Of a stretch of 64,000 nt of DNA, positions 28,137-53,383 are shown in pieces. The stretch covers positions 62,001-126,000 of the IMG/VR virus record IMGVR_UViG_3300032675_000001. The stretch is one strand, 5' to 3'. The position numbers were made by a program, and so were the translations under genes. Positions within the stretch are counted from its first letter, which is position 1, and the number at the start of each line of letters is the position of its first letter. Below the pieces are notes generated by a model. The model saw only the letters and a program-made list of their open reading frames with translations, was not told the DNA's origin and ran no database searches.

Positions 28137-28229
28137 TTATTTTATATACCTACACGGGTCTTTAGTAGTCTTACCAAGATACATCAATCCGGTTTTGTTA
28201 TGGGTTTTCTTGTACAAATAAATAATCAT
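28137..28229 (-). pseudogene. Truncated GIY-YIG-like (Seg-like) endonuclease remnant
   Basis: MIIYLYKKTHNKTGLMYLGKTTKDPCRYIK*: the YLY...YLG motif, then a stop after 30 aa. Confidence 0.7.
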
Positions 28230-28296
28230 ATGCTGATGCTCCTTAATAGCGTTAGAGTGAGTGGGGGCGCAATCCCGCGACTCACAACTATTTATA
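28227..28296 (-). promoter_or_regulatory. Late promoter + conserved structured leader, copy B
   Basis: TATAAATA gtt GTGAGT cgc GGGATTGCGCCCC c ACTCAC tctaac GCT attaagg AGC atcagcat ATG. Confidence 0.8.
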
Positions 28297-28297
28297 T

Positions 28298-29776
28298 TTA
28301 AGAGCAAACTTTGACACCGTATAGCAACTCGAAACGATCCGCATCGGCGCGACCATTTACCATAGGTTCGCCACGAATGTTTAATGATGTGTTGAGGAGC
28401 ATAGGACAACCTGTCTCCTCATACCAACGCTCTAGCAGTCTTCTGATTCCTGATCCATCATTCGGAACGCTCTGAACACGGCTAGTCCCGTCAGCATGAA
28501 CGATAGCAGGGAATAGGTCAGGATGCCTACAAGGAGCGACGACTTGCATATACCTACTGTTATTCCAGCCGTAAGGCATATCAAAATAGTCAGACAAATG
28601 CTCCTCCAAAATGACTGGAGCAAACGGTCTGAACTTTTGTCTGCGCTTGATTTCATTTACTTTGTCCTTAATCTCTGGTCCTCTAGGATCGGCAAGTAGA
28701 GAACGATTCCCCAATGCTCTTGGTCCGAACTCTGCTCTTCCACTTGCTACTCCTACAATCTTGTGTGTATACAACTCTTTTACGATATTGTCAACAGGAT
28801 AATCACCTTTGATTTCATGACCGAGGAATGCATCCTTCCATGCTAATCTTTTACCATATCCAAGAGCGGCTGCACCAAGAGAGTTTCCTGCATCACCGGG
28901 ATTTGGCATGATCCATATGTTATTAAAGAATGCACCAAGTTTACGATTGGCAGAACAGTTCAATGCAACGCCACCGCCAAACACAAGATTGCGACTCTTC
29001 GCAAAGATTCGAGCTTTAATCATGACTGTAGAAATCAACGATTCAGTGAGAACCTGAGTTGATGCTGCAATGTCCATCTCATTCGCATCTTTACCCAAAT
29101 ATTCGTCTTGTAATCCTGTGTGAAGATTAACGGCAAAATCTAGGGTTGATCTATCCTCTATCAAATCTTCAAGCTTGTTAACATGAATTGGATTACCATA
29201 TGCAGCCATTCCCATAAGGATATACTCTTCATCTAATGGACGCAATCCTACATAGGCAGTCATGGCAGAATACATCAATCCTATTGAATCTGGATATTTC
29301 TTGCCCCACAGACGTTTATATACTGCTCGTCCATTTTTGTCATATGATGCATCCCATATAGACATAGTATCAAGTTCACCAATAGCATCAATGATGACTA
29401 CCGTAGCATTATCATACGGGCTAGTTTGAAATCCAGCAGCAGCATGTGACAGGTGATGGCTGTGAGTACTCAGGGTAGTAAAATCAAACCGATCATAGAT
29501 ATCATGACCCATGATCTTGGAAATGCTTAGAGGACCAATCGGCTGTTTAGCCTTGAACTGCCTGATAGCTTTTAGCCACGGCTTTTCATAGTAGTGAAGT
29601 TCATACTCACCATTGGTATATTTTAGAGCATCATCCACCAATGCATGACATAGATTGGCATCATGTTTATTCTTACTGTAACGCTCACTGTGCCCTGCAA
29701 ACTTGATTTCACCATGATCATCCACAACAGTTATGGCAGCATCATGGAATCCGCAACTAATACCAATATAGTTCAT
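28298..29776 (-). CDS. Carbamoyltransferase (NodU/CmcH family)
   Basis: HDAA, HHLSHA, DAIGE, GGVALNC, GRAEFGPRALGNRS, FRPFAP, HADGTSRVQ and LLNTSLN motifs. Confidence 0.95.
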   Translation of the reverse strand: MNYIGISCGFHDAAITVVDDHGEIKFAGHSERYSKNKHDANLCHALVDDALKYTNGEYELHYYEKPWLKAIRQFKAKQPIGPLSISKIMGHDIYDRFDFTTLSTHSHHLSHAAAGFQTSPYDNATVVIIDAIGELDTMSIWDASYDKNGRAVYKRLWGKKYPDSIGLMYSAMTAYVGLRPLDEEYILMGMAAYGNPIHVNKLEDLIEDRSTLDFAVNLHTGLQDEYLGKDANEMDIAASTQVLTESLISTVMIKARIFAKSRNLVFGGGVALNCSANRKLGAFFNNIWIMPNPGDAGNSLGAAALGYGKRLAWKDAFLGHEIKGDYPVDNIVKELYTHKIVGVASGRAEFGPRALGNRSLLADPRGPEIKDKVNEIKRRQKFRPFAPVILEEHLSDYFDMPYGWNNSRYMQVVAPCRHPDLFPAIVHADGTSRVQSVPNDGSGIRRLLERWYEETGCPMLLNTSLNIRGEPMVNGRADADRFELLYGVKVCS

Positions 29777-29792
29777 ACAACATATCACCCGA

Positions 29793-29812
29793 TAAATATC
29801 ATATGATATTTA
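29793..29812. promoter_or_regulatory. Perfect 20-bp palindrome carrying TAAATA on both strands between divergent genes
   Basis: TAAATATCATATGATATTTA. Confidence 0.6.
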
Positions 29813-29828
29813 ACGAAACATTTATTCA

Positions 29829-31052
29829 ATGAATAAATCCTTATGCCCATATCCTTTTATACATTCACATGTTAGCGCAACATATGAAAGAAAGCTTTGC
29901 TGTGTCGCAAATAGAAGTATAACGGAGTTGCACAAAACTACCGATGAGTACTGGAACTCAGATTATATCAAAAAAACTAGACTTGATATGATATCCGGTA
30001 TTCCAATACCTGACTGCAGCTTTTGTTATGATCATGAAAACAATGGCGTAAAATCACTTAGACAAACTCTTAATGAACAGTTTCCCATACAGCATTTAGT
30101 TGATCAGACCAAAGAAGATGGATCATTGGAAGTTCCGCCATCCTTTTTTGACTATCGTTCCACGACATGTAATCTGCATTGCACTACCTGTGACCACAAT
30201 CATAGTTCTAAATATGCAAAAATTTCCAATAAGCTATTGGGTAAAGAAACGATCCATAAAGTTGACATTGCCTATGAAAACAGCTTGGGAGAAGAAATCA
30301 TCACTGGACTGAGGAACAAAACGGTTAATACCATCTATTGGGCAGGCGGCGAACCAATGATAATGAAAATGCATTGGGATGTGATTGGCGAAATGGAAAA
30401 GTTATATGATGATGCCGAATATTGCTCCTACATAAAGAGCATAAAGCTATACTATAACACGAATATGACCAAGTTATACTGGAAGGGGCGTCTAATACCA
30501 GAAATACTATCCAAGTTTGATGTTACGTTATGGGCCAGTATAGATGGAGTAGAAGAAACGTTTGAGTACTGTAGAGACGGAGCAAGCTGGGAAACGGTCA
30601 AGAACAACTGGCTAATATATAAAAAATACGTTCCAAAGACTTGGGTTACATCCGTTCTATCTGCCCCAGTATTGATGGATATAGATCGCTTTCTTAGCTT
30701 TTTTGAAGCGACTGATTCCACAACCGACTTTTTCAATCACCAGTATGTGCCAAATGCGTTCTTGAACTTGCTGGATATCAGGCAGTACCCATCGGAAATA
30801 TTCAACGATATCATTGACAATGCCATAGCCAGAGTTGAGAAGTCTCCTTTAGGTGGCAAAGAATACACGCTATCTATTCTAAGAAAGTATAAAGCAGAAA
30901 ACCAACACATTGACTCAGTTGGTTATTCCGAAATAAAAAAACAAATCATTCAAAGAGACAAGTTTCTAATATCCGGATTATCATTTGAGCAATTACTTGA
31001 ACAGATTAATCCTGACGCTCACCGATGGTATAAGTCTATAACAGTTGATTAG
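29829..31052 (+). CDS. Radical SAM protein with N-terminal Twitch/SPASM-like Cys cluster
   Basis: CPYPF..H...CC, C..CY, CNLHCTTC, AGGEP and SIDG motifs. Confidence 0.9.
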   Translation: MNKSLCPYPFIHSHVSATYERKLCCVANRSITELHKTTDEYWNSDYIKKTRLDMISGIPIPDCSFCYDHENNGVKSLRQTLNEQFPIQHLVDQTKEDGSLEVPPSFFDYRSTTCNLHCTTCDHNHSSKYAKISNKLLGKETIHKVDIAYENSLGEEIITGLRNKTVNTIYWAGGEPMIMKMHWDVIGEMEKLYDDAEYCSYIKSIKLYYNTNMTKLYWKGRLIPEILSKFDVTLWASIDGVEETFEYCRDGASWETVKNNWLIYKKYVPKTWVTSVLSAPVLMDIDRFLSFFEATDSTTDFFNHQYVPNAFLNLLDIRQYPSEIFNDIIDNAIARVEKSPLGGKEYTLSILRKYKAENQHIDSVGYSEIKKQIIQRDKFLISGLSFEQLLEQINPDAHRWYKSITVD

Positions 31053-31809
31053 ATAGTTCTATTAACTTTGGATAAAAATCCTCAAAGACCTTCTTGACTT
31101 CATCAGCATTGACAATCTGATCATATGGATCAATTGATAACTGCTTTTCCCTGTAGATACCAAAAGCCTTTTCTCGCTCAGCATCACTCAGATTATCAGA
31201 TTTAGCAATCAGAGTATCATACTCCACAGTATCATAAGTGATCATTGAATCAATGATCTTTTTGTGTTGCTGTTCTATCAGATAACGAGAAACGATGAAA
31301 GACTTTAGTTCATCAATATCTACGTTTAGCATCATGGTATTACGATATGTGCTAAAGATAAAACTCTTTTTCGCAAACATGGCGCTGATTACCTTGTGCT
31401 CAAAGCTTCGTTCAACATACAAAAACTTAAACCCAAGATTAGTCAGATAATTTATTCCGTCAGCAAATCCAATTGATGCCATTCTGTCATCAAGAAACAC
31501 TCTGCATGTTAGAGCCTGAGACATATTCGCTTTGGATATGATATCAAGCCGTTCCTTGGCAACGTCTGACATTGTATTAAAGGTTGCTGCTGGCTTATTG
31601 TAAATCTTTAATTTACCATTTTCCAATGCTATAGTGTGAACTAGGCCAGCCTGAACCGTGAAGATTTCTTGCAGAGATACCACATCGTTGTATTTATTAC
31701 TAAGAGAGTAATTAACAAATGCTTCTGTTAACTGCGTTCCTGATCTTGGAACGCCCAAAATCACATAACGGTGATGTTCTAAATCCCACGGAAGATTGCT
31801 GTTAAACAT
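31036..31809 (-). CDS. Sulfotransferase-like (P-loop) protein
   Basis: ILGVPRSGT (PAPS 5'-PSB-like), R......S and YD motifs. Start moved to MFNSNL. Confidence 0.55.
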   Translation of the reverse strand: MFNSNLPWDLEHHRYVILGVPRSGTQLTEAFVNYSLSNKYNDVVSLQEIFTVQAGLVHTIALENGKLKIYNKPAATFNTMSDVAKERLDIISKANMSQALTCRVFLDDRMASIGFADGINYLTNLGFKFLYVERSFEHKVISAMFAKKSFIFSTYRNTMMLNVDIDELKSFIVSRYLIEQQHKKIIDSMITYDTVEYDTLIAKSDNLSDAEREKAFGIYREKQLSIDPYDQIVNADEVKKVFEDFYPKLIELSNQLL

Positions 31810-31813
31810 TCTA

Positions 31814-31918
31814 TTACTTATAGATGAATGGATCGCGCTTGCGAAGTTCCTTGATGCGCTTTTTGTATGCGCGATCACGTTTTATATTATTGATAATCTT
31901 TTTAATCCACTTGAACAT
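31814..31918 (-). CDS. Small basic protein (34 aa)
   Basis: Not in the track. MFKWIKKIINNIKRDRAYKKRIKELRKRDPFIYK*, with AGGA upstream. Confidence 0.65.
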   Translation of the reverse strand: MFKWIKKIINNIKRDRAYKKRIKELRKRDPFIYK

Positions 31919-32678
31919 TATTGTTATCCTTTATAAAATTGTACAGTTCTTCAGCATACAGACGATGTGGTTCCTCACTATGATGCCAGTACTGTGCCTT
32001 GTCATTGGTGTATCCCATGTGTCTGTATTTCCAGTAGAATGCTTGACTTTCATCTGTACCAACATTGTAATATCTGGTCTTGTCTATCTTGTTGACAAGG
32101 TAACTGGTAAAATGTTCATTCGGAGCAAACATATGCATGGTGTCACACATGACATAATCAATACCCAAAGACTTTAAATAATACTGTGTCATTAATACAT
32201 CAGTGGCTGACCAGTTTTCCAATATCGTTTCATTTTCTGCCATGAACTGATGATATGGAGGAATCATTTCCTTTTCATCGTCTGTATTACCATGCCATCC
32301 AAAGTTTATACGAAAGAAACTATTGCTTGAAGAATCAAACCATGGACTTGCAGAATTTCCCTCATTATAATAACATGCTCGTTTTTTTGCTGGAACTTCC
32401 ATGCGTGTGCTTTCAGTCCATCCTATTATAACAAACACGTCCATTGTATCGGGATTATATTCTTCATGAAACCAACTAAGAATGCTACGAGCAATACCAG
32501 AATTGGTGGCACCATTCAATGAAATATTAAGTGGACGATAGCCCATTTTCTTAGCTAGTACAGCACCATATGCGTTGTCACGGTTGTAGTGGCTATCTTC
32601 TGTTCCATCAATTTCTGATCCGGCAGAATGGCTACATCCGGATATTAAGGCGATCTTTTCTTTTGGCATATTGGTCAT
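31902..32678 (-). CDS. SGNH-hydrolase-like protein
   Basis: GCSHSAG, G..N..I and terminal HH...H motifs. Confidence 0.6.
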   Translation of the reverse strand: MTNMPKEKIALISGCSHSAGSEIDGTEDSHYNRDNAYGAVLAKKMGYRPLNISLNGATNSGIARSILSWFHEEYNPDTMDVFVIIGWTESTRMEVPAKKRACYYNEGNSASPWFDSSSNSFFRINFGWHGNTDDEKEMIPPYHQFMAENETILENWSATDVLMTQYYLKSLGIDYVMCDTMHMFAPNEHFTSYLVNKIDKTRYYNVGTDESQAFYWKYRHMGYTNDKAQYWHHSEEPHRLYAEELYNFIKDNNNVQVD

Positions 32679-34891: not shown

Positions 34892-34901
34892 CTTAGGTTC
34901 C

Positions 34902-35987: not shown

Positions 35988-36013
35988 ATCATTCCAGTTT
36001 TCAAGTATTTGTG

Positions 36014-37237: not shown

Positions 37238-37325
37238 GAAAATATTTATAGTCCCTGTTGGTGTGTAATAAATTTTATCTGATATTCCATTATACCATGG
37301 TATAATGCGCCGCGTTATTTAATAC

Positions 37326-41810: not shown

Positions 41811-41814
41811 GCCA

Positions 41815-42792: not shown

Positions 42793-43094
42793 AATGTCTC
42801 TTCTATATATTTCTTTAGTTCTTTTAAAGTGGTATCGTAATCTTCTACTACACCGATCATGCTGTTTTTGACTTTAGGTTCAATGACTACAGTATAACAA
42901 CAGTTGTTATTGGTGGTCCATCTGAATACTCGGTTATAAATCCATCGTTCACTGTAAGTTGGTTCACCGAAAAAGCCTTTATATCCCGAAATGAAACCAT
43001 ATGACTTGTAATCATTAGCATTAGGATGAAAATCAAGCTGCTCCAGCTTTTTGAGATTATATAACTTCTTCAAGAAATATAACATGTCAGACAT
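42789..43094 (-). CDS. Hypothetical protein
   Basis: Coupled ORF; start uncertain. Confidence 0.6.
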   Translation of the reverse strand: MSDMLYFLKKLYNLKKLEQLDFHPNANDYKSYGFISGYKGFFGEPTYSERWIYNRVFRWTTNNNCCYTVVIEPKVKNSMIGVVEDYDTTLKELKKYIEETL

Positions 43095-44368
43095 TAACTT
43101 GCTGCCCATTCATAGACTTCTTTAATCTCTGGTACAATGTCTTCAAACTTCTCGTTACGAAACTGATCCAACTCATCATTGAACTGCTTGAACTCCAAAA
43201 TGCCGCCCTTGTTCTCATCACCTACGTTGAGGTTATAGATGATCATCTTGAAGCCGTTAAAGATGTCTACATTGTCCTTATACTTTTCCTGATACACACG
43301 GTAAAGTTCAGTGAGCCTACGCTTTACGTGGTTTGGCAGAATCATGATATTTGCATACCATGGATTAGTAGCCAGATTAAATCTAGGACTGGTCTTGGTA
43401 TCAATAAAACCATTGTCAATCATATAATCAAAAAAGTCTGCAAAGTGAAAGATGTTCCATATGGAAATAGTAGGTGTAATCTGAAACTGAACGTGTGGCA
43501 GTTCTTCCTTCAACTTCTTCATATTCTTGATAGTGCGGTCCCAGTCAGTTCCTTTACGCATACATTCAGCAAGAGCACCATGAGCATCAAGTGATGCCCA
43601 TACCTGAATGTTCTTGAACTTCTTCCAGTATTCAATCAAGTCTTTGTTCTTATAGCCATGTAGCGTAGAGAAGTTTGTAGTATAGTTTAACTCAATACTA
43701 TCTGCTTGACCCGATTCAATCCAATAATCAAGACATTCATAGTGTTCTGGTGTAATAATGATTTCACCACCAGCAAAATATACTTCCGTAACATCAGCAA
43801 GATATGGCTTTAACTTGACCATGAACTGTTGGTCTTCGTTATTATTAACAACTACTTTCTGACCGGGGAAATATTCATCCCACATTTCCTTGCCACGCTT
43901 GTCCAGAAACTCTTGTGCCCACTGTGATGAGCATGATGGACCACATGAGCGGCACTTCATGTTACAGAGGTTACTGAACCGAATATCCATATACTTCATT
44001 TCAAACTCAGATAGCGAACCATCTTCGTTTGTGTTTTCTGCAATATAGTTAACGTAGTCAAGACCTCTGCGACGATTATGAGACTGTCTCATCGTCCATG
44101 TGCCCATAAGTTCCAAGTCAAAGCAACGCTTACACTCTGGAACTTCCTCATCATTAAGCATTGCCTTACGAATCTCATTGTAACGATCACTGTTCATCAT
44201 TTCAATGATAGACTGATCTGGATCAATCTGTGCCACTGGCATATTACTATCAGCAACACAGCAAGGCATTACTCTTGAATCAGGCCATGCATGAAAGTGC
44301 ACCCATGGCAGAACACAAAAGTGCTTACCGTTGCATACCAGATTCTCAACTACGTTTTTATCAGCCAT
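43094..44368 (-). CDS. Radical SAM protein with N-terminal Twitch-like cluster
   Basis: FCVLPW.H...PCC, CNMKCRSC and AGGE motifs. Confidence 0.92.
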   Translation of the reverse strand: MADKNVVENLVCNGKHFCVLPWVHFHAWPDSRVMPCCVADSNMPVAQIDPDQSIIEMMNSDRYNEIRKAMLNDEEVPECKRCFDLELMGTWTMRQSHNRRRGLDYVNYIAENTNEDGSLSEFEMKYMDIRFSNLCNMKCRSCGPSCSSQWAQEFLDKRGKEMWDEYFPGQKVVVNNNEDQQFMVKLKPYLADVTEVYFAGGEIIITPEHYECLDYWIESGQADSIELNYTTNFSTLHGYKNKDLIEYWKKFKNIQVWASLDAHGALAECMRKGTDWDRTIKNMKKLKEELPHVQFQITPTISIWNIFHFADFFDYMIDNGFIDTKTSPRFNLATNPWYANIMILPNHVKRRLTELYRVYQEKYKDNVDIFNGFKMIIYNLNVGDENKGGILEFKQFNDELDQFRNEKFEDIVPEIKEVYEWAAS

Positions 44369-44612
44369 TTGCTTCTTCTGTTTCCGAAACTCTTTTATAA
44401 GTTACAATATTATTGAGAATATTCTTAATCTTGATTTCAATGCTGTTGTCTTCATCATCAAGAGTTACTTGTGCAGCAGCATCACTGCCAAATGATCTGA
44501 TAATATCACTCATTACCGCATCACATGTTTCCTGAGTTAGAGGCTCAAACATATACTTGTCAAGAATAGCGTTAATCTCTTTATCCATTGCTTCATTAAT
44601 ATCAAATGTCAT
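44361..44612 (-). CDS. Hypothetical protein
   Basis: Coupled ORF. Confidence 0.65.
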   Translation of the reverse strand: MTFDINEAMDKEINAILDKYMFEPLTQETCDAVMSDIIRSFGSDAAAQVTLDDEDNSIEIKIKNILNNIVTYKRVSETEEANG

Positions 44613-44613
44613 A

Positions 44614-45153
44614 TTACTTTCCCTGTTTCAACTTTTGAATTTCACTCAGTAACTGTTTATATTCTGCTTCTTTCTTTGCATGTTCTTTTGCCATAACAGT
44701 CAACTCGTCACGAAGTTTTTTAGATTTTTTTAAGAAGCTGTTATCATCTGTTGTTTTGCTCGTTGGAAGCTTAACTACACACGGTGTGCTAATCTTCATG
44801 GCATGATTGCGAATACGTGCTGCCAGATGTTCTAGTTTTGTTGCCAGCCAATCATAAAAACGCACACGCAAGCAATCATTCTTTTCGGTAATTTGTTGCA
44901 AACGATCAATCAAAGTGCGATTGTCCTTTGCATCTTTTAAGATTTTAATTTTGTCACGAAGACGCTGAATGGCATTAGCCGATGCTATTACACTTTTAAG
45001 TGCGGCTGCTCGTTCATCTGTATCTGGATTGTCCTGACCATCAATTTCTTTTACAATTGCACAGTATTTGTTATGGACCGATACTGCCGCCTGTAATTCT
45101 TCTTCAAGAACTGGCAAATCAGATACATTGTATTCTTCTATTAATATTCCCAT
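44614..45153 (-). CDS. Hypothetical coiled-coil protein
   Basis: Abutting ORF. Confidence 0.7.
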   Translation of the reverse strand: MGILIEEYNVSDLPVLEEELQAAVSVHNKYCAIVKEIDGQDNPDTDERAAALKSVIASANAIQRLRDKIKILKDAKDNRTLIDRLQQITEKNDCLRVRFYDWLATKLEHLAARIRNHAMKISTPCVVKLPTSKTTDDNSFLKKSKKLRDELTVMAKEHAKKEAEYKQLLSEIQKLKQGK

Positions 45154-45154
45154 A

Positions 45155-46387
45155 TCATTTCTCCAAATCTCTCAGTTTACTTAGTTCAGGGAAGACAGAC
45201 CAAAAGTTTTCGTCTCTGATTCTATCTATAGAACGAGTGTGCTGTAGGAACGTTTCCTTTACTTTAGCCCAATCATCACTGTCTGATGCAAAGTTGACAG
45301 CATCGGTAATAAGTCTTGACAATGATGTTCCATCACCTTCGTTGGCTGTTGCCCATGCCAATGCTTTCTTGGCGGCTTCATCCTTAAGTTCACGAGGTAA
45401 TGATTTGGCACAGTAATAGTTAGGATGAACTGCAAGATAGAGTGAGTGATACCAATCTTCTCTACGAACTATTCCCTTGTCCTTTAGGTATTGATAAAAC
45501 TCACCAATGGTGCTATAGTTAAAAATGCTAAACACCGTGTTCATTTGAAATACTACCTGCTCAAGGTCACGAAAAATGAGGAGGTTTTCCTCTACTTTAC
45601 CCCAATCAGTTCCCTTGCGCAACCATTCTGCACGTTCGCCATAATGATCTATTGAGCAAGATAGTTCCACTCTCTTAAAGTGTTTCCACAGTTCAAGGAC
45701 ATCATGCTTTTTATACTTGATATTGCTTGCGTTTGTGTTGTATCTTAATGTGATATCGGTGCGACCTTTGCGAATCATTTCCTCAAGCATCGTATAATGC
45801 TCGTCGGTGATCAGTGGTTCGCCGCCTGCAAAATATGCAAGGTCAATATTTTCCACTTGATCAAGTGCTTCTTGCAGTAGATTACCCTTGGGATCAGCAT
45901 GAATAACAATAGGATGATTTGGGTCATAGTTCTTCTGCATCTCTGCACCCCACTGTGAGCTAAACTCTGAGCCACAGGTTCTGCATTTAAAGTTACATAT
46001 GTTGGAGAAACGAATGTCAAAATAGTGCATCTTAAAATCAGGCACGGTGCCATCATCCAGAGTGGTCGGAACGATTTCGTCAAACCGTGATGCAAACTGC
46101 TCTTTACTGTAGTTTCTGAATGAGTGTGGTCCAGCTTCCTCATGCTTATAGCAAAAGTCGCAAATCTTAGATTTGCGACCATTAAGCATATCAAGGCGAA
46201 GCGCCTTCATCTTCTCATTATTGAATGCTTCTTTGAGGGAAGTCTCTTTGGTATTACCAAATGGTTCAGTATAGTTGTTTGAACAGCAAGGATAGATATC
46301 ACCTTTAGGCGTCACGTTTAAGTGAAGCCATGGAAACATGCAGAACTCTTTGCTTTCGTTTAACAGGTAATCTTTATCTAAATCCAT
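45155..46387 (-). CDS. Radical SAM protein with N-terminal Twitch-like cluster
   Basis: FCMFPWLH...PCC, CNFKCRTC and AGGEP motifs. Paralog of 43094..44368. Confidence 0.92.
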   Translation of the reverse strand: MDLDKDYLLNESKEFCMFPWLHLNVTPKGDIYPCCSNNYTEPFGNTKETSLKEAFNNEKMKALRLDMLNGRKSKICDFCYKHEEAGPHSFRNYSKEQFASRFDEIVPTTLDDGTVPDFKMHYFDIRFSNICNFKCRTCGSEFSSQWGAEMQKNYDPNHPIVIHADPKGNLLQEALDQVENIDLAYFAGGEPLITDEHYTMLEEMIRKGRTDITLRYNTNASNIKYKKHDVLELWKHFKRVELSCSIDHYGERAEWLRKGTDWGKVEENLLIFRDLEQVVFQMNTVFSIFNYSTIGEFYQYLKDKGIVRREDWYHSLYLAVHPNYYCAKSLPRELKDEAAKKALAWATANEGDGTSLSRLITDAVNFASDSDDWAKVKETFLQHTRSIDRIRDENFWSVFPELSKLRDLEK

Positions 46388-46446
46388 TAACTTTCCCTTA
46401 TAAGACTATATTATATAGCACGATAAAAGGGAGTGCCAATGTTTTA

Positions 46447-46644
46447 TTACGATTCCCGAATCACATCAAATATGTCACCCCATTCAATGACAATCTCGTA
46501 CTGTGCGTGTTGATATTTCCGCACTACCCTACAATATGATGGTTTAAACGGGTAGACAATCTTTCCGCTTACAGTACGATGGAACCACTTTGGCTTCATG
46601 GGCATCCAATCCTGAATGACTACCGGATCAAAAAAGTTTTTCAT
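46447..46644 (-). CDS. Hypothetical protein
   Basis: Short ORF loosely similar to 47634..47855. Confidence 0.55.
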   Translation of the reverse strand: MKNFFDPVVIQDWMPMKPKWFHRTVSGKIVYPFKPSYCRVVRKYQHAQYEIVIEWGDIFDVIRES

Positions 46645-46690
46645 AAAATTTCGCGCTAATCTACTTAGGTGTGTAAGTCATAAAAATCAG

Positions 46691-46734
46691 CATCTTAGTC
46701 CCCCATCATAAATACGTGATAGGAGACTAAGATG
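46691..46734. promoter_or_regulatory. Long hairpin with late-promoter motif at the loop and RBS/ATG in the 3' arm
   Basis: CATCTTAGTCCCCCATCA-TAAATACG-TGATAGGAGACTAAGATG. Confidence 0.7.
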
Positions 46735-46890
46735 ACACTTGATGAATTTAATGAAGAATGGCGCGCGCTGACAGAGGATGAAATTGAAGCGCTTGGTGGG
46801 CTACGGAAGCGGATATTCATTCTGGACCCCGCAATATACCTTCAACAAACTCTTCGTATTCTTGCAGATCATGGAATTGATATACATTGA
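46732..46890 (+). CDS. Small antisense-oriented protein (52 aa)
   Basis: Not in the track. ATAAATA at 46708..46714 and AGGAG RBS precede MTLDEFNEEWRALTEDEIEALGGLRKRIFILDPAIYLQQTLRILADHGIDIH*. Confidence 0.6.
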   Translation: MTLDEFNEEWRALTEDEIEALGGLRKRIFILDPAIYLQQTLRILADHGIDIH

Positions 46891-46983
46891 CAATGGATTG
46901 CTTTTCCATTTGATGTCTTCGTTTAACGCCCTACCACCAAAAACAAACATTAAATCATCAGAAATACTAGTCGGAATGTTCAT
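46801..46983 (-). CDS. Hypothetical protein
   Basis: ATGA-coupled to the upstream LRWS gene; overlaps the + strand ORF. Confidence 0.4.
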   Translation of the reverse strand: MNIPTSISDDLMFVFGGRALNEDIKWKSNPLSMYINSMICKNTKSLLKVYCGVQNEYPLP

Positions 46984-47180
46984 GACCACCTCAACGTAAA
47001 CAGAGTGGCATCTTTTGGATCACCGAACCAAAACTCATAGATTATGTCTATTGACAGGCTGACATCAGACATATCTGTTTCTCTGTACCGACTATAACTG
47101 ACACAATGTTTTTTAGCCCAAAAAATCAACTCTAGAGTGGTAGCATCCGGATCAAACAGTTCTACTTTTGTTAACTCCAT
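46980..47180 (-). CDS. F-x-L-R-W-S family protein
   Basis: Ends FGDPKDATLFTLRWS. Confidence 0.75.
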   Translation of the reverse strand: MELTKVELFDPDATTLELIFWAKKHCVSYSRYRETDMSDVSLSIDIIYEFWFGDPKDATLFTLRWS

Positions 47181-47641
47181 CTTAGACTAAACCACGTATA
47201 GTCAGACTCTTCCTTGAAGGCGAAAAACATTACATCGCCGCCGCCGATTTCATTAAACTCAAAGTTATCTTGGTTATCCCACAGCCCACGAAGCCAATCG
47301 TTTCTCCACTTACCTTGACAATTCTGTTCGCACCAGTCTGCCATTTGGTCTATGACATCAAAATTAAAGGCAGTATTTGTAATACGCGGAACGTTTAATG
47401 CATGATTAGCAGTGCTAGGACGCAGTTGTGTAAAGCTATAGTAGATATAGTGTTTATCAGGTACTGACCATATGAACTTATAACCGTGATAGTATGTGTG
47501 TGCCCAACGAGCCATTGGGCCAATATCAGAGTCATATCTGCGCTCATATTCACGCCAAGTTTTACAGCCATGAGTTTCTAGAAAGCGTTTTTCACGCCAT
47601 CCTGTCCATCGCGTTTTTAATTCTTTTATAGGATTATTCAT
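47171..47641 (-). CDS. F-x-L-R-W-S family protein
   Basis: WCEQN; ends FKEESDYTWFSLRWS. Confidence 0.8.
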   Translation of the reverse strand: MNNPIKELKTRWTGWREKRFLETHGCKTWREYERRYDSDIGPMARWAHTYYHGYKFIWSVPDKHYIYYSFTQLRPSTANHALNVPRITNTAFNFDVIDQMADWCEQNCQGKWRNDWLRGLWDNQDNFEFNEIGGGDVMFFAFKEESDYTWFSLRWS

Positions 47642-47855
47642 CTCGTAAAACTTTCAGCATGTATTCTTTTTGAGAGAGCCATATATTGCCAATATACCCG
47701 TAATCAGTGCTACGTATCCCTTTGTAGGCTGTTCTTAGGAACAACAACTTGTTACTACGATTGCATCTGGTAAAGAGCCATAAAACTCTGCGTTTCACCC
47801 AAGTCCATCTCACTCTCATAGAACGGTCAATATCTTTATCCCAGTAAAAAGCCAT
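47634..47855 (-). CDS. Hypothetical protein in the LRWS array
   Basis: Ends WLSQKEYMLKVLRDE. Confidence 0.65.
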   Translation of the reverse strand: MAFYWDKDIDRSMRVRWTWVKRRVLWLFTRCNRSNKLLFLRTAYKGIRSTDYGYIGNIWLSQKEYMLKVLRDE

Positions 47856-47858
47856 TAG

Positions 47859-48047
47859 TTATCCCCACCTCAACTTAAACCATATTGCATCTTCTTCGCT
47901 CTGAAACCGTATGCCTTCTCTACCGTCTATACTACTTCCAACAGTCCATCGTTGTGGTTCCGGCAACGGTGGGTTTGGCATCTTTTCATCTAACCAGTCG
48001 CCAGCTTCTACTAACACTTTTAAGGGGACTTCAATATCAATACTCAC
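47859..48047 (-). CDS. F-x-L-R-W-S family protein
   Basis: GTGA-coupled start; ends FQSEEDAIWFKLRWG. Confidence 0.75.
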   Translation of the reverse strand: MSIDIEVPLKVLVEAGDWLDEKMPNPPLPEPQRWTVGSSIDGREGIRFQSEEDAIWFKLRWG

Positions 48048-48403
48048 GACCACCTCAACATAAACCAAGAAACATCCTTCTCATTCTTGAGAAAGACATA
48101 GTATACTCCCGTATACCAATCGCCCTGTTTTAAGTTCTGTTCGCACCATTCACGTATTACGTAATAGTCCTGTGGATCAATCTCAGAATACCATCCTCCG
48201 TCTCGTTCTTCTACCCACTGATTCTTGTCAAGAATGATACCAAGATCATCGGTCCAGCGCGACCAATGCCACGCTGGATTGCCACGTTCGTAGCGAAACT
48301 TTGGCTTGATCCTTTCTGGTGAAACTATATGCCATGCAGCATTCAGTTTTCTAGTTTTAGCAGTCACTGTTGTCTTTATAATATCAAACTTAATATCAGT
48401 CAT
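48044..48403 (-). CDS. F-x-L-R-W-S family protein
   Basis: WCEQN; ends NEKDVSWFMLRWS. Confidence 0.8.
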   Translation of the reverse strand: MTDIKFDIIKTTVTAKTRKLNAAWHIVSPERIKPKFRYERGNPAWHWSRWTDDLGIILDKNQWVEERDGGWYSEIDPQDYYVIREWCEQNLKQGDWYTGVYYVFLKNEKDVSWFMLRWS

Positions 48404-48618
48404 GTTTCCCTCAAGATAAACCAAACATAATCTTCTTCACGATCAAAAACAATGTGTACTTGACCTTCCCGAATCGTGATCTTTTGATCATACGTATCGT
48501 TCCAATGACATACCCATGCACGGTAAAAAACCCCCTCCGTATTAATAATCTTGTCGAACCTATTACGGAACCATTCAGGTTGCTGATTATGATCCTTCGG
48601 GACTTTGTAGTAATACAT
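48400..48618 (-). CDS. F-x-L-R-W-S family protein
   Basis: TAATG-coupled; ends FDREEDYVWFILRET. Confidence 0.75.
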   Translation of the reverse strand: MYYYKVPKDHNQQPEWFRNRFDKIINTEGVFYRAWVCHWNDTYDQKITIREGQVHIVFDREEDYVWFILRET

Positions 48619-48935
48619 TATGACCACCTCAATGTCAAATAGACCCAAGCCTTTTCAGCATCAGCATATCGTTTGAATATCATAGAACGATGCCCATAGT
48701 CTTCTCCACCAAACGATTTCATGATTGCCAGTGCATCATTTAGTACCTCAGTAAAATCAATGCTAAATTTAACAGCAATAACCCACTTGTTCTTGTGGCC
48801 ACCTGTCTTGCGTTGCACCCTCTTACGATAGAGCATAAAATGATTGTTTTGTAGCTCTACTGGTCTATAAATGTCAAGCGTCACATTCTTCAACAGACGG
48901 GAAAGCATTTCTTGCCCTGAAATAGTTTTAGTCAT
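48618..48935 (-). CDS. F-x-L-R-W-S family protein
   Basis: ATGA-coupled; ends DAEKAWVYLTLRWS. Confidence 0.75.
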   Translation of the reverse strand: MTKTISGQEMLSRLLKNVTLDIYRPVELQNNHFMLYRKRVQRKTGGHKNKWVIAVKFSIDFTEVLNDALAIMKSFGGEDYGHRSMIFKRYADAEKAWVYLTLRWS

Positions 48936-49213
48936 GACCACCTCAACAGAAACAAAATCATGTCGCGTTCATCGGTGAACTCGTAATAGTCATCCCAGTT
49001 GTTGTATGTCGCATTGTATTTTGATGCCATATCTGCGTTCCACTTAACCCAATGCATATATACACTACGACTGTCAGTTGGAGCAATGGCTTGATGCTCT
49101 TTGGAGATGTTATAAAACCATTGCTTCCGCACCGTGCGGCTGGCATCATCATGGACATATAGACGCAGATTATCCCTTGTTACATGGGATTCATTAGGTT
49201 CACTTCTTGACAT
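48932..49213 (-). CDS. F-x-L-R-W-S family protein
   Basis: Ends FTDERDMILFLLRWS. Confidence 0.75.
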   Translation of the reverse strand: MSRSEPNESHVTRDNLRLYVHDDASRTVRKQWFYNISKEHQAIAPTDSRSVYMHWVKWNADMASKYNATYNNWDDYYEFTDERDMILFLLRWS

Positions 49214-50577
49214 AAGCGGTAGAAATCCAACATCTCAGGGTACACGGTTAACAAGTCCGTCTCACGACGATCATCAATCTCATTGAACCAGTTGTAGAAA
49301 TCTCTACGTCCTTCAATGAGCTTCTGATCGCTATACACCGTTTCCGCCATATAGTCAACAACTCTTTTGAACTTTTCATACTCGATAGTAGAGAAAGCAT
49401 CGGCGCGGTCATCATCAAGGTTGTCTTCCATAAACTTCAATGACTCGCACATATATGGCATGAACTCATCCTTGGGAAGAATGTTCATGTCATACTGAAT
49501 CGGATCACGAAGATATGGAGTGTCAAAACGAATGATGTGCTGCTTGCGCTCTTCATCCCATCCATACTGCTTACGCCATTCAAGAAACTTCTCTAGAAGA
49601 CTCTTGAAGCTTGTCACACTGAAAATATTAAATGTGATCATGAATGTGATAGGAGACTGTGCCTTGCTTACATAGGTGTGGAAGTTCTTTTCCCACACAT
49701 CTAGGTCTAGTCCAGTGCGAATATACTCCGCACGTTCTCCCCATGTATCCATTGAAGTGAACAGCTTGAATGCTCTGATTTTACCTTCATCCTGTAGCTT
49801 TCGGACTTTGGTTGCAAGGCGATCAATCAGAATATTCTTCGTGCCTAGGTTTGAGTTAATGTTTAGTTCCAACCATGGCATTGGGTCTTCATCAATCTTG
49901 TCTAGCAGTTGCCATGTAGACTTGTGAAGAGTTGGTTCTCCGCCTGTGACACGCATGATGTTTAATGTTTGTCTCAGTTCAGGCCACCATTCCCAGAATG
50001 CATCAACATATGGGTTTTCTTCTTCACGTTGATAAAGTTTCATCCAGTCAATATCGCAGCGATGGTTCTTGACACTTGTTACCGGACCAAAATCTTCAAT
50101 CTCTTTGAAGTAGCGAGTTGAGTATTTTGGATGACAGTATCCGCATTTGAAATTGCATTCGTTGCCAAAGTTTATTTCCAAGTATTCCGGATTGATATTC
50201 TGATTCCAAGCACCCTTTGCTGTCTGTTCGTAACGTTCTTCTGTGAAGATAGAACTGTTGCGAATGTGTCGGTCAGAGATATAATCCTTACCCATTGCTT
50301 CCACGTTCCAGCAGTATTGACACCCTTTTGGCTTTTCTCCATTGAGCATCTGCTGACGCTCTAACTTCTTTTCAGTTGTATTGTGGAGAGCCGATGGATT
50401 ATCTTTTAGTTCACTCAATGGAATCTTGTGAGGAGCCGGGTGATAGCATGAATGCGTTTCCCCTGTCTGCAAGTAGATAGTCGTATGCATCCATTTTGCT
50501 AAACAGAAAGTCTTAGTAGAGTCAACGTCTATATAATCACGTATGCGTTTAATTCTGTCAACTTCGGATTCTTGCAT
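49180..50577 (-). CDS. Radical SAM protein with N-terminal Twitch-like cluster
   Basis: FCLAKW...SCYHP, C.YCW, CNFKCGYC and TGGEP motifs. Start moved to MQESEV. Confidence 0.92.
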   Translation of the reverse strand: MQESEVDRIKRIRDYIDVDSTKTFCLAKWMHTTIYLQTGETHSCYHPAPHKIPLSELKDNPSALHNTTEKKLERQQMLNGEKPKGCQYCWNVEAMGKDYISDRHIRNSSIFTEERYEQTAKGAWNQNINPEYLEINFGNECNFKCGYCHPKYSTRYFKEIEDFGPVTSVKNHRCDIDWMKLYQREEENPYVDAFWEWWPELRQTLNIMRVTGGEPTLHKSTWQLLDKIDEDPMPWLELNINSNLGTKNILIDRLATKVRKLQDEGKIRAFKLFTSMDTWGERAEYIRTGLDLDVWEKNFHTYVSKAQSPITFMITFNIFSVTSFKSLLEKFLEWRKQYGWDEERKQHIIRFDTPYLRDPIQYDMNILPKDEFMPYMCESLKFMEDNLDDDRADAFSTIEYEKFKRVVDYMAETVYSDQKLIEGRRDFYNWFNEIDDRRETDLLTVYPEMLDFYRLCQEVNLMNPM

Positions 50578-50594
50578 GGGCTTCTTTTCTGATG

Positions 50595-50662
50595 ATAAAT
50601 AGCTGTGAGTCGCGGAACAGACATTCCCACTCACTCTAACGCTATTAAGGAGCATCAGCATG
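50595..50662 (+). promoter_or_regulatory. Late promoter + conserved structured leader, copy A
   Basis: ATAAATA gct GTGAGT cgc GGAA cagaca TTCC c ACTCAC tctaac GCT attaagg AGC atcagc ATG. Confidence 0.8.
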
Positions 50663-51175
50663 ACTATTTACACTGGCAATAACTATCGGAAAATTTATAA
50701 ACAACACCATGGTCCTATCCCAAAAGATGAAAACGGGCGACGATACGACATTCATCATATTGATGGTGATCATACCAACAATCTCCCGGACAATCTGATT
50801 GCCATTCCAATTCAAGAACATTATGATATTCATTATGCCCAAAAAGATTATGGTGCATGTTTTCTCATAGCACCACGCCTAAAAATGTCAGCAAACGTAC
50901 TATCAGAACTAGCATCAAAACGCAATAAACAACAACTTGAAAATGGGACGCACGTTTTTCAAAGTGGTATGCAGACAAAAAACAATCTGATACGAAGTCA
51001 AAACGGAACTCATCCTTTTCTTGGCGGAAATGTTCAGCGTGATATGCACAGAAAAAATTTAGAAAACGGTACACATTTCGGTAAAATGGTGTGGACATGT
51101 CCACACTGCGGCAAGAACGGTAGGAATAAATCTAACTATACCAGATATCATGGCAGTAACTGTAAATCGCTGTAG
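50660..51175 (+). CDS. HNH homing endonuclease
   Basis: DIHHIDGDHTNNLPDNL...EHYDIH, NGTH repeats and a C-terminal CPHC..RYHG..C. Confidence 0.9.
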   Translation: MTIYTGNNYRKIYKQHHGPIPKDENGRRYDIHHIDGDHTNNLPDNLIAIPIQEHYDIHYAQKDYGACFLIAPRLKMSANVLSELASKRNKQQLENGTHVFQSGMQTKNNLIRSQNGTHPFLGGNVQRDMHRKNLENGTHFGKMVWTCPHCGKNGRNKSNYTRYHGSNCKSL

Positions 51176-51178
51176 TTT

Positions 51179-52126
51179 TCACCAGCCTTCTATCTTTCTA
51201 ATGACATCCATCTCTTTTACCAATGGACCCACGTTGTATTTGTCTGCGTTGTAGTGACGCTTGAAGAACTTGCTTTGTTCTTCTAAAAACATGCACATTG
51301 GTAGACCTAACTTATCTGCTAAGATATCTCCTACTATTTCCGCAGCGATGGTTGGATGCTTGTCTTTGTGAGATTCCCAAAGATTGTGAAAAGTATCAAA
51401 GTCGGATACTTCACGATAATCCCAGTCAGTGAGCATAGTCATCCATGTACCTAATCTTGCACCGTAAATAGCCCAGATACCATTCTCCACATCGGCACCA
51501 ACATTGTGCCAAATAGTGAGATTGTTCAGATTGCGTGATGCTACTCGCTCCTTAAAATCATCTATACTAGGCTTTGCACCACGATCCAGCACCATCTTGA
51601 CGCCTTCACGAAATCCTGCTCTCCACGCCTGAAAGGGAGTATAGTTAGGATATGTAGTAGAGTAGCAGTTCCACAAAGCCCAGTATAGACTATTGGTAGA
51701 ATCCATACAGAAGTCTACCGATGTTGAATCACTTCCATCAGTGTTTTCGTGGGTTTGCATAGTTGAAACATATGATTTTGTCCATGACGATATTCCTCCA
51801 TTTCCATAACGGAGACCATTGATATGATTAATGGCCTTCCACCTAAATTGTGCTAGTTTATACGAAGGGTCCAAATCAGTGAAGTCCAATTGGACATTAA
51901 AAAACTCCTCATGTGGCAAGTTATCCCCATCTATTACGAAAAAACGTTCGGTGTCGCTAGCTTCTCCTGCTGCTTTGTGGGCAGCGTCAGAACCCTTCAC
52001 ACCATCAACCCTCTTGGCCCATGGGCACATATTTTTTATCTTAAGCCAAAATTCTTCCTTAGATGGTTCATCATATGAAAGATAAATTACGTCACAATCT
52101 GCAACGTCTAAAATGTCTATACTCAT
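51179..52126 (-). CDS. Glycosyltransferase-A-like protein
   Basis: D.IYLSYDE, RVDGVKG..AAH.AA, VIDGD (DxD), NGLRYGNGG and AWRAGFREG motifs. Confidence 0.65.
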   Translation of the reverse strand: MSIDILDVADCDVIYLSYDEPSKEEFWLKIKNMCPWAKRVDGVKGSDAAHKAAGEASDTERFFVIDGDNLPHEEFFNVQLDFTDLDPSYKLAQFRWKAINHINGLRYGNGGISSWTKSYVSTMQTHENTDGSDSTSVDFCMDSTNSLYWALWNCYSTTYPNYTPFQAWRAGFREGVKMVLDRGAKPSIDDFKERVASRNLNNLTIWHNVGADVENGIWAIYGARLGTWMTMLTDWDYREVSDFDTFHNLWESHKDKHPTIAAEIVGDILADKLGLPMCMFLEEQSKFFKRHYNADKYNVGPLVKEMDVIRKIEGW

Positions 52127-52713
52127 GTAATATTCCTATTCTTACAACGAACGCCGTGCCATCTACTATACATCGGACTACTTACTGTCATGGAGCAATG
52201 CTCACATGTTTTCATTATTTTAGACGGATGCGTACCATCTTTTAATTGTTTTTTCGTTACGGCTCCACCTACTAAATTGTGCCTGTTCTCTTCAATTCTT
52301 TTTAAATTTTTCTGTTTAGCGTTTTCTGAGTTTTGCCACGGGTGCTTCCCTTCCATCACCTGTTTTAACGCTTTTTCTCGTTGGTGGTCACTATTCTGCC
52401 ATGGGTGAATGCCTCTTGCAACTTGACTTGCTGCATTCCTTTTTGCCAACTCTGACTTCTTTTCCTGAGATATATCCATACGCTTTGACAGGCTAAGACA
52501 TGCTGCCCAGTCTCCTTGAGAATAATGAATGTCATAATGTTCTTGTATGGATACTGCAATTAAATTTTCCGGAGAATTATTATGACTGTTTCCATCACGG
52601 TGATGAATATCATATGACCTTCCGTAATCATCCAGTGGAATAGGGCCATGAAACTTTTCGTATAATCGTCTGTAAAAGGTTGAAGATGTTCGTTTTCTAG
52701 AGTAAATAGACAT
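52123..52713 (-). CDS. HNH homing endonuclease, paralog of 50660..51175
   Basis: HGPIP.D..GRSYDIHHRDGNSHNNSPENL...QEHYDIHY, G.HPW repeats and CEHC..RWHG..C. Start moved to MSIYSR. Confidence 0.9.
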   Translation of the reverse strand: MSIYSRKRTSSTFYRRLYEKFHGPIPLDDYGRSYDIHHRDGNSHNNSPENLIAVSIQEHYDIHYSQGDWAACLSLSKRMDISQEKKSELAKRNAASQVARGIHPWQNSDHQREKALKQVMEGKHPWQNSENAKQKNLKRIEENRHNLVGGAVTKKQLKDGTHPSKIMKTCEHCSMTVSSPMYSRWHGVRCKNRNIT

Positions 52714-52779
52714 ACTGATGCTCTCCCAAGCGTTAGAGTAGTTGGGGATTCCAGTCCCGCGAACTACATCTTTATTTAT
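52711..52779 (-). promoter_or_regulatory. Late promoter + conserved structured leader, copy C
   Basis: ATAAATA aagat GTAGTT cgc GGGA ctggaa TCCC c AACTAC tctaac GCTT ggga GAGC atcagt ATG. Confidence 0.8.
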
Positions 52780-52799
52780 GTCTGACATCAACTATTTCA

Positions 52800-53126
52800 T
52801 CAGAGTGCATAAGTCTTTAAATCCCAATATTGTCCATCGTCATCAGTAAGAATACTGATGTCTTCTTTTTCACACAGTGCGCCTTTTGTATCTGGTACCA
52901 AGCGTGATATAACTGCGTTTGTGTTTATCTTTATCAACTTGCCATCAACTACACGAACGTCTGGACGGCCTTCTGCGTATGTTTGAGCATCAATGACAAT
53001 GTAGTTACCATCGTGCTTTTCACAAGAGTATGAGACTACACAACCCCTTTCATCATAGTAGAGCCTGAACTCTGGCTTTACTATGATAGGTGCTTCCCAG
53101 ATGATTACCTCTTCGTTATCCATCAT
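52800..53126 (-). CDS. Hypothetical protein
   Basis: Coupled ORF. Confidence 0.7.
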   Translation of the reverse strand: MMDNEEVIIWEAPIIVKPEFRLYYDERGCVVSYSCEKHDGNYIVIDAQTYAEGRPDVRVVDGKLIKINTNAVISRLVPDTKGALCEKEDISILTDDDGQYWDLKTYAL

Positions 53127-53383
53127 TTCAACTCAAAATAATCTGCGATGACCTCAGATGGAAGCATATGTTCCCATTTGTCGCTCCCGTTGAGCGGCAA
53201 ATCAGCGACTCTCATGCATTCTCTGACAACCAGTTCAGCATACATTTCCAGAAACTTGGTAGTATAACCGATGCTACTGTTAACCCTGAATATAGAGTCG
53301 TAACCAGCAGATTCGGCACTTTGCGACCATCGCATTGCTCCCTCTAGGATTTCTTGACATGCGTGGCGAGAAATATTTGACAT
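53123..53383 (-). CDS. Hypothetical protein
   Basis: Coupled ORF; AELVVREC motif. Confidence 0.65.
   Translation of the reverse strand: MSNISRHACQEILEGAMRWSQSAESAGYDSIFRVNSSIGYTTKFLEMYAELVVRECMRVADLPLNGSDKWEHMLPSEVIADYFELK

Follow-up and report, generated by a model that had tools for sequence, protein, structure and literature searches.

What kind of element is the short repeat that precedes three nuclease genes in an uncultured T4-like phage, and on which strand does it act? The repeat lies in a 64,000-nt window (positions 62,001 to 126,000 of IMG/VR record IMGVR_UViG_3300032675_000001). An initial annotation made from sequence alone described it as a covarying structured leader of about 65 nt, shared by nuclease genes of two families. 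It inferred a portable cis-regulatory RNA, such as a ligand- or protein-sensing switch, a small ribozyme or a mobile-element end. The analysis bears out the repeat itself. The interpretation is supported only in part, as the element is real, covarying and portable but the evidence does not support a structured leader of the nuclease mRNA. Instead, the conserved hairpins fold on the strand opposite the nuclease gene, which points to a small antisense RNA made from a second, inward-facing late promoter.

A widespread cassette of homing-nuclease genes

The three copies span 50595-50670 (+; copy A), 28296-28219 (-; copy B) and 52779-52703 (-; copy C). A search with the box-plus-stem pattern hits the window three times, against 0.00 expected in shuffles, and a covariance model built from 75 homologues and run with filters off finds exactly these three, at 92.2, 90.8 and 87.2 bits, with nothing else at E<=10. 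The features of the initial annotation are largely confirmed: ATAAATA, a GTGAGT/ACTCAC stem (GTAGTT/AACTAC in copy C), an inner GGAA/TTCC-type stem, a GCT/AGC hairpin around the Shine-Dalgarno, ATCAG, the start codon, and 36 nt identical between copies A and B. Three points need correction. The “CGC/C internal loop” is a C-bulge, one G-C pair (A-U or A.C in variants) and a second C-bulge; the “invariant” TCTAAC does vary (CTCTAAT, CTCTAG and others) and is one strand of a helix; and the element extends past the ATG to a conserved TATTTA box, the reverse complement of the ATAAATA late-promoter box, which had been missed.

Copy A precedes HNH-A (50660..51175, +), a 171-aa HNH_3 homing endonuclease (Pfam PF13392, E=7e-10) that by tblastn is 32-45% identical to I-TevIII-like genes in 92 T-even-type phage records. 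Copy C precedes HNH-C (52123..52713, -), a 196-aa HNH_3 homing endonuclease (E=1e-9) whose stop overlaps the start of the next host gene (ATGA). Copy B precedes a 30-codon remnant (28137..28229, -) of a seg-like GIY-YIG nuclease gene, which aligns with the N-termini of full-length 165-235-aa proteins that follow the same leader. A representative of this cluster hits phrog_314 “homing endonuclease” at 7e-15, although Pfam GIY-YIG itself was not hit at E<=0.01.

The same element, a control cassette of ~80 bp, occurs in well over 200 IMG/VR viral contigs of uncultured T4-like freshwater phages, almost always in front of homing-nuclease genes of several families (I-TevIII-like HNH, seg-like GIY-YIG, NUMOD3/I-TevI-type and TnsA-like). 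No match to a described RNA family was found in Rfam 15: the only window hit at gathering score is a permuted tmRNA elsewhere, and there are no hits at E<=10 on either strand of 50540-50720. Searches of 50,697 cultured phage records by megablast and blastn found nothing, and the covariance model scores at most 10 bits on the I-TevIII-like loci of phages S16 and Bp7. In bacterial and archaeal genomes, 46 pattern hits (a number in the estimated chance range) include only 4 true elements by the covariance model, three on short MAG contigs and one on a 148-kb contig binned with a Haliscomenobacter MAG.

Comparing empty and filled sites shows that leader and nuclease ORF are inserted together as one cassette. 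At site A, the insertion broke a TAATG stop/start overlap, and the cassette end supplies about 17-20 nt with a purine-rich Shine-Dalgarno, with the host start becoming ATG, GTG or TTG in different filled relatives. The same comparison at site B, attempted through the carbamoyltransferase gene, found relatives at most 62% identical, for which synteny could not be used. No conserved motif was found at the 3' end of the cassettes.

The fold and its strand

In copy A, the 5' box ATAAATA (50595..50601, +) is a late-promoter-type box for the nuclease. The outer and inner stems of the initial annotation make up hairpin H2 (50605..50634, -), with 6 bp, a bulge, 1 bp, a bulge and 4 bp. Hairpin H1 (50636..50658, -) is an 8-bp helix on the antisense strand (CUGAUGCU/AGCGUUAG, two G.U), formed by the “invariant” CTCTAAC and ATCAG, and its 7-nt loop is complementary to the nuclease Shine-Dalgarno (50647-50652). 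On the sense strand only a 3-bp GCU/AGC stem forms there, the H1 region having two A.C mismatches in 8 positions. The 3' box TATTTA (50665..50670, -) lies in HNH codons 2-4 and reads (G)TAAATA on the minus strand. In copy B (28219..28296, -) the 5' box TATAAATA is at 28289-28296, H2 at 28257-28285, H1 at 28233-28255, the ATG at 28227-28229 and the 3' box at 28219-28224 (ATAAATA on the + strand at 28218-28224). In copy C (52703..52779, -) the 5' box is at 52773-52779, H2 at 52738-52767, H1 at 52715-52736, the ATG at 52711-52713 and the 3' box at 52703-52708.

The stems covary strongly, but their exceptions reveal the strand under selection. Across 16 paired columns of 124 distinct sequences, non-Watson-Crick pairs are 163 A.C/C.A against 10 G.U on the nuclease strand, and the A.C pairs are G.U wobbles on the opposite strand. 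In a sample where the 5' half of H1 was left free, position 3 is A.C in 130/130 and positions 4-5 are A.C in 27 and 56, with at most 1 G.U. Folding energies agree: the antisense MFE averages -17.9 against -13.0 kcal/mol for the sense strand and is lower in 171/177 elements, while RNAalifold gives -20.6 against -12.7. The predicted antisense RNAs of the window give -21.0 kcal/mol (z=-1.8) for copy A, -23.1 (z=-3.1) for copy B and -21.6 (z=-2.8) for copy C, against sense z of about -0.8. The antisense fold comprises two adjacent hairpins with 19 pairs, 98.9% of cells are paired, and 108 cells are changed on both sides against 29 in shuffles (0/500). Mutual-information analysis finds only the hairpin pairs, with no sign of the candidate pseudoknots (bulge CGC with AACGCT, and the loop with CAG). 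Nothing points to a riboswitch or ribozyme, as the “invariant unpaired” nucleotides taken for a ligand or protein site are mostly the two strands of the antisense helix.

TATTTA-like sequence is present in 97/99 elements (exact TATTTA in 76), 5-8 nt after CATCAG and in reading frames 76/11/10, so it is conserved as nucleotides, although coding constraint adds to this because most 3' boxes sit in one frame (x-I-Y). Its reverse complement has the same profile as the 5' box, with A-TAAATA in 82-83% of both, but two of the three window copies read GTAAATA on the antisense strand. ATAAATA behaves as a promoter box in this phage, since 8 of 16 non-element boxes lie within 40 nt upstream of gene starts (P=2e-10). 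No sigma-70-like hexamer pair lies in any of the three elements except one weak 9/12 match inside the HNH-A ORF. After H2 the antisense strand has at least 5 U in 8 nt in 159/177 elements, a tract that is interrupted, begins 2 nt after the stem, is not called by a simple consensus terminator scan and is partly forced by the sense promoter box.

An inferred antisense RNA and its rivals

Together, these results suggest a model in which each copy is the control end of a mobile homing-nuclease cassette, with two T4-type late-promoter boxes (N-ATAAATA) facing each other about 75 bp apart. The outer box would drive the nuclease mRNA, and the inner one, in codons 2-4 of the ORF, a cis-antisense RNA of roughly 70 nt. 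This RNA would start at the base of H1, continue after a single A into the bulged G+C-rich H2, and end in a U-rich tail complementary to the nuclease promoter box. The predicted species span 50590..50659 (-) for copy A, running on toward the radical-SAM gene start at 50577, 28232..28300 (+) for copy B and 52714..52783 (+) for copy C, with ends inferred from sequence. Pairing with the 5' end of the nuclease mRNA, together with collision of the convergent polymerases, would keep nuclease translation low, as IS10 RNA-OUT does for transposase. If the RNA starts 5-6 nt after the box, however, it covers the Shine-Dalgarno but not the AUG. The analysis itself establishes the element, its spread, its membership of the cassette, selection for the fold on the antisense strand and the conserved reverse box; that the reverse box fires, where the RNA starts and ends, and that it represses the nuclease are inferences made without transcript data. 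The odds of this reading are put at about 0.5.

Could the flanking host gene be the real beneficiary? In this less likely but serious alternative, the inner promoter and the H1-H2 structure exist mainly to restart transcription of the host gene beyond the cassette and give it a stable 5' leader, so that insertion in reverse orientation is not polar, and any effect on the nuclease is secondary. The gene upstream of the leader is on the opposite strand in 97 of 132 clear cases, its start lying a median of about 35 nt beyond the 5' box, and of the 132 cassettes with both neighbours scorable the nuclease is antiparallel to both in 53, against 17 co-oriented. In those 53 the proposed antisense transcript runs straight into a host gene, which suggests a different or additional job, and the new host Shine-Dalgarno at site A fits this view. 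However, the 3' box and both hairpins are at least as well kept (91% against 78%) in co-oriented cassettes, where no gene lies downstream of the putative antisense promoter, as in window copies B and C. A hairpin followed by a U-rich tract just before the host gene would hinder its expression rather than help it, and a simple stabilising leader needs neither an invariant G.U nor invariant bulges.

A structured leader of the nuclease mRNA is unlikely, even if extended to the T4-type switch in which read-through transcripts pair the promoter box with TATTTA and hide the start while late transcripts lack the 5' arm. The outer hairpin, being mostly Watson-Crick, also forms on the sense strand, the two boxes are complementary, and T4 I-TevI/II/III, segB and Aeh1 mobE use such switches (PMC2988022). 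Opening the start region costs on average 1.5 kcal/mol more in read-through than in late RNA, but the box-box helix is only 6 A-U pairs closing a ~75-nt junction, with a mean pair probability of 0.18 and no covariation or compensatory change in or beside the boxes, and the A.C/G.U asymmetry and energies favour the other strand. A DNA-level signal, in which one strand extrudes as single-stranded hairpins during replication or double-strand-break repair and marks the cassette end for recombination, is very unlikely. The element does sit at a cassette end, and G.T pairs are tolerated in DNA hairpins, so strand asymmetry alone cannot separate RNA from single-stranded DNA. Against this, no matching motif was found at the other cassette end, the boxes match a promoter used elsewhere in this genome, and homing by nuclease cleavage and repair needs no end-specific signal.

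A broader reading, somewhat less likely than not, is that these elements encode a previously undescribed, very widespread family of ~70-nt phage antisense RNAs, made from late promoters embedded in the first codons of homing-nuclease genes. They would form a universal, orientation-independent “safety catch and adaptor” shared by at least four unrelated nuclease families, with the A.C/G.U asymmetry letting one DNA segment encode a tightly folded antisense RNA and, on the other strand, an open, translatable ribosome-binding site. Homing nucleases are the main selfish DNA of large lytic phages, and how they are kept harmless has been worked out only for a few T-even genes, all through mRNA hairpins or autorepression. 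The element suggests a different and much more widespread solution, a portable two-promoter module with an antisense RNA, reused by several nuclease families and able to sit in either orientation between tightly coupled host genes. It would add a large new RNA family to phage annotation, is a clean natural example of strand-asymmetric design, and gives a short sequence signature for finding homing-nuclease cassettes in metagenomes.

Comparison with known systems

One precedent is RNA-IN/RNA-OUT control in IS10/Tn10 (PMC5006887), in which a 69-nt RNA-OUT is made from pOUT facing pIN. The proposed arrangement shares face-to-face promoters at a mobile-element nuclease or transposase gene, the inward one just inside the ORF start and giving a stably folded antisense RNA of ~70 nt complementary to the translation initiation region, and a sense promoter that overlaps the stem and tail of the antisense RNA. 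Here, however, the putative promoters are T4-type late boxes rather than sigma-70, there are two hairpins rather than one, the overlap is about 70 nt against 35 nt, the RNA probably stops short of the AUG, and the gene is a homing nuclease in a lytic phage. I-TevI/II/III, segB and Aeh1 mobE of T-even type (PMC2988022) likewise carry their own TATAAATA late promoter next to a conserved hairpin, with the aim of keeping nuclease translation low or late. In those systems the hairpin is on the mRNA and hides the RBS only in early transcripts, whereas here the fold is selected on the other strand and lies downstream of the box.

Hairpins and two conserved motifs have been described upstream of free-standing endonucleases in GOS “fractured genes” (Dassa et al. 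2009, PMC2677866), in environmental T4-like or cyanophage loci that include freshwater Lake Gatun. These have TATAAATA and a hairpin upstream of GIY-YIG and Vsr-like nuclease ORFs, the hairpin being retained when the nuclease is lost, and may be the same family; the authors read the structure as an mRNA hairpin and did not report the reverse box, H1 or strand asymmetry. The CfrI RNA of cyanophage S-PM2 (PMC2984593) is an antisense RNA of a T4-like phage that overlaps a homing-endonuclease gene, but it is ~225 nt, links psbA to the endonuclease gene, is a single described case and has no sequence or structural similarity to this element, with no Rfam or blastn match. The PeSL cassettes of T4-like phages (PMC2839356, PMC4122927) are short repeated promoter-plus-stem-loop units that sit between genes and travel with variable genes. 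They combine an early sigma-70 promoter with a terminator stem-loop and mediate recombination between unrelated ORFs, whereas the element described here has late-type boxes on both strands and is tied to nuclease genes.

Distribution of the element and its place in the mobile cassette

All three copies of the element proposed in the initial annotation were recovered in place, and that observation is confirmed and far stronger than three copies suggested. A pattern made of the box and the first stem occurs 3 times in the window, against 0.00 expected in shuffles, and a covariance model built from 75 homologues, run with filters off on both strands, finds these three at 92.2, 90.8 and 87.2 bits and nothing else at E<=10. 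Copies A and C precede paralogous HNH_3 genes, which are 32-45% identical to I-TevIII-like homing endonucleases of T-even phages, while copy B precedes a 30-codon remnant that matches the N-terminus of full-length seg-like GIY-YIG proteins. Directly downstream of this remnant (23167-28104, minus strand) lies a 1645-aa ORF made of about 20 repeats of a motif like FDFSWHPD...PYIY.FGTQW, with no Pfam hit, so the putative outer promoter of copy B may now serve it. The nuclease cassettes sit between tightly coupled genes of a cluster (28298-31052 and 43094-57729) of carbamoyltransferase, several radical-SAM proteins and glycosyltransferase-like ORFs, which looks like a sugar or DNA-modification region. 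An 851-aa ORF elsewhere in the window (19712-22267, minus strand) has an N-terminal DNA methyltransferase match (phrog_67, 2.6e-32) and a long uncharacterised remainder.

The element is widespread in viral metagenomes. Three different exact-pattern scans of IMG/VR, each returning at least 120 matches, together gave at least about 250 contig stretches, nearly all of which show the full architecture. The full 360,683-bp record from which the window comes, IMGVR_UViG_3300032675_000001, carries at least two more copies outside the window. The ORF that follows is almost always of a homing-nuclease type: clustering the first 95 residues gives three large groups of 67, 44 and 35 plus small ones, and the named groups are phrog_314 “homing endonuclease”, HNH/HNH_3, NUMOD3 with the I-TevI DNA-binding domain, and TnsA-like endonuclease. 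Flanking genes include family-B DNA polymerase, a gp46-like SbcC, clamp loader and large terminase, so these are T4-like phages. No match was found in Rfam or in 50,697 cultured phage records, and cellular genomes lack the element except for four probable mis-binned phage contigs. Of these, the only long one is a 148-kb contig of a Haliscomenobacter sp. MAG (75.9 bits), which is either a phage genome binned with the MAG or a hint to a Bacteroidota host. A permuted, two-piece type tmRNA gene in the window (16913-17307, minus strand; Rfam RF04321 at 85.5 bits and alpha_tmRNA at 65.8 bits), for which ARAGORN gives the tag peptide ANDNSTMDIALAA, may also hint at the host group.

Comparison of empty and filled sites shows that the leader belongs to the mobile cassette. 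The host gene between copies A and C (51179-52126) has 80 retrieved relatives, and in about 70 of them the three host genes abut with overlapping stop and start codons (TAATG at site A). The window carries a 602-bp insert at site A, consisting of the nuclease gene HNH-A plus leader in antiparallel orientation, and a 674-bp insert at site C, consisting of leader plus HNH-C in the same orientation as the host genes. Only four other relatives are filled at one of these sites, the sporadic pattern expected of homing genes. At site A the leader-side end of the insert brings about 17-20 nt with a purine-rich Shine-Dalgarno for the displaced host gene, while at site C the HNH stop overlaps the host start (ATGA). 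Just upstream of leader C (52781-52800, minus strand) lies a decayed duplicate of the first codons of the host gene that now starts at 52126, as comparison with the empty relatives indicates, suggesting that the cassette entered within the first ~25 nt of that gene and carries a replacement 5' end. The leader may also outlast its nuclease. In locus L162, one of the IMG/VR stretches, a leader with a 9-codon ORF and no TATTTA box (positions 132-230) sits directly upstream of a large-terminase gene and looks like a solo leader left after nuclease loss, and stretches L012, L046 and L058 show a similar 4-codon stump where L011 has an intact HNH.

Strand of the conserved fold

Read on the nuclease strand, the element opens with an N-ATAAATA box and a spacer, usually of 3-5 nt, followed by a 6-bp stem, a bulged C, one pair (G-C, A-U or A.C), a second bulged C, and a 4-5-bp stem with a variable loop. 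After one U come CUAAC plus three variable nt, a 6-7-nt loop holding AAGGA(G), and three variable nt plus AUCAG; C(A)AUG follows, then 0-2 nt and UAUUUA. The stems covary strongly, as the initial annotation had proposed: in the 75-sequence alignment 243 cells are changed on both sides, against 65 in shuffles (0/500). The small RBS hairpin is fully paired in 174/177 elements with at least 11 stem types, against 102 in permuted controls, and mutual information over 124 sequences finds only these helices, with no pseudoknot.

The pattern of non-canonical pairs, however, points to the other strand. In the paired columns the non-Watson-Crick cells are 163 A.C/C.A against 10 G.U when read on the nuclease strand, and A.C on one strand is G.U on the other. 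In a sample where the linker was left free, the CUAAC block that had been annotated as invariant pairs position by position with AUCAG: positions 1 and 2 are C-G and U-A in 130/130, position 3 is A.C in 130/130, and positions 4 and 5 are Watson-Crick or A.C, with never more than one G.U. On the antisense strand this is an 8-bp helix, CUGAUGCU/AGCGUUAG, with an invariant G.U. Folding predictions agree, as the antisense MFE averages -17.9 against -13.0 kcal/mol and is lower in 171/177 elements, and RNAalifold gives -20.6 against -12.7. The three window copies are predicted to fold into two adjacent hairpins, H1 and H2, with z=-1.8, -3.1 and -2.8, against about -0.8 on the sense strand. On 28 diverse antisense sequences 19 pairs are predicted, 13 of them with compensatory change, and 98.9% of cells are paired. 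If the constraint were only a need for a weak hairpin on the mRNA, other mismatches should appear, and almost only A.C does.

A reverse late-promoter-type box and the inferred antisense RNA

TATTTA-like sequence follows the start codon in 97/99 elements (exact TATTTA in 76), 5-8 nt after CATCAG. The ATG floats between the two and the box falls in reading frames 76/11/10, so it is conserved as DNA or RNA, not as protein. Its reverse complement, (A/G)TAAATA, has the same position profile as the 5' box. In this phage 8 of 16 other ATAAATA boxes lie within 40 nt upstream of gene starts (P=2e-10). Boxes at 1034, 2492, 3230, 15805, 19762, 37243, 57751 (-) and 29792 (+) lie 6-31 nt upstream of gene starts and are likely late promoters, some of them so close to the ATG that the transcripts would be nearly leaderless. 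N-ATAAATA is the late promoter of T4-like cyanophages, and TATAAATA that of T4 (PMC2984593). Could the two boxes instead pair with each other? They do not covary, and a helix between them would be six A-U pairs with a mean predicted pair probability of 0.18. The commonest 3'-box variant, TACTTA, gives A.C against the 5' box on the sense strand but G.U on the antisense strand (13 A.C against 3 G.U), so read-through RNA in the antisense direction could still close a box-box helix, although this could not be separated from the coding constraint (Thr-Thr-Tyr).

The simplest reading is two late promoters facing each other. T4 late transcripts start about 5-7 nt after the box, which would place both starts at the base of a helix: the outer stem for the nuclease mRNA and H1 for the antisense RNA. 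The proposed RNA would start near the complement of CAGC and continue through H1, whose loop is complementary to the nuclease Shine-Dalgarno, a single A, and H2 with two bulged G. It would end in A(C/U)UUUUAUUUAU, the complement of the spacer and 5' box, with at least 5 U in 8 nt in 159/177 elements, for a total of about 70 nt. In antisense RNAs such as CopA, bulges in the stem protect against RNase III and speed pairing. The interpretation offered in the initial annotation, a structured mRNA leader or switch, was supported only in part and is replaced by a two-promoter cassette whose selected fold is antisense. The element, its membership of the cassette, the conserved reverse box and, very probably, the strand of the fold emerge from the sequences themselves, whereas activity of the inner promoter, which is somewhat more likely than not, the ends of the RNA, and repression of the nuclease, to which we assign a probability of about 0.45-0.5, are inferred.

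Nothing shows that the inner box fires, and two of the window copies read GTAAATA there. The U tract is interrupted, is not called by the consensus terminator scan, and is partly a by-product of the sense promoter. Moreover, most cassettes lie antiparallel to their neighbours: the upstream gene is on the other strand in 97/132 cases, and both neighbours are antiparallel in 53 against 17 co-oriented. The “antisense” transcript would then run into a host gene whose start is a median of about 35 nt away, and the module may therefore also, or instead, restart and lead that gene. Against this being its only role, the 3' box is kept in 91% of co-oriented cassettes, where no such gene exists, against 78% of antiparallel ones.

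Relation to known systems

The element does not appear to belong to the T4-type RBS-occluding hairpin class, and the T-even I-TevIII-like genes examined lack it. It is not a PeSL, which uses an early promoter and terminator (PMC4122927). Dassa et al. probably saw part of it in ocean and lake metagenomes, a presumed identity, and read it as an mRNA hairpin (PMC2677866). An antisense RNA over a homing-endonuclease gene is also known in one T4-like cyanophage (CfrI, PMC2984593). The proposed arrangement has the layout of IS10 RNA-OUT, which is 69 nt, made from pOUT facing pIN, and complementary to the transposase initiation region (PMC5006887). In this view the cassette would work like IS10 RNA-IN/RNA-OUT and like the general T-even theme of restraining homing nucleases (PMC2988022).
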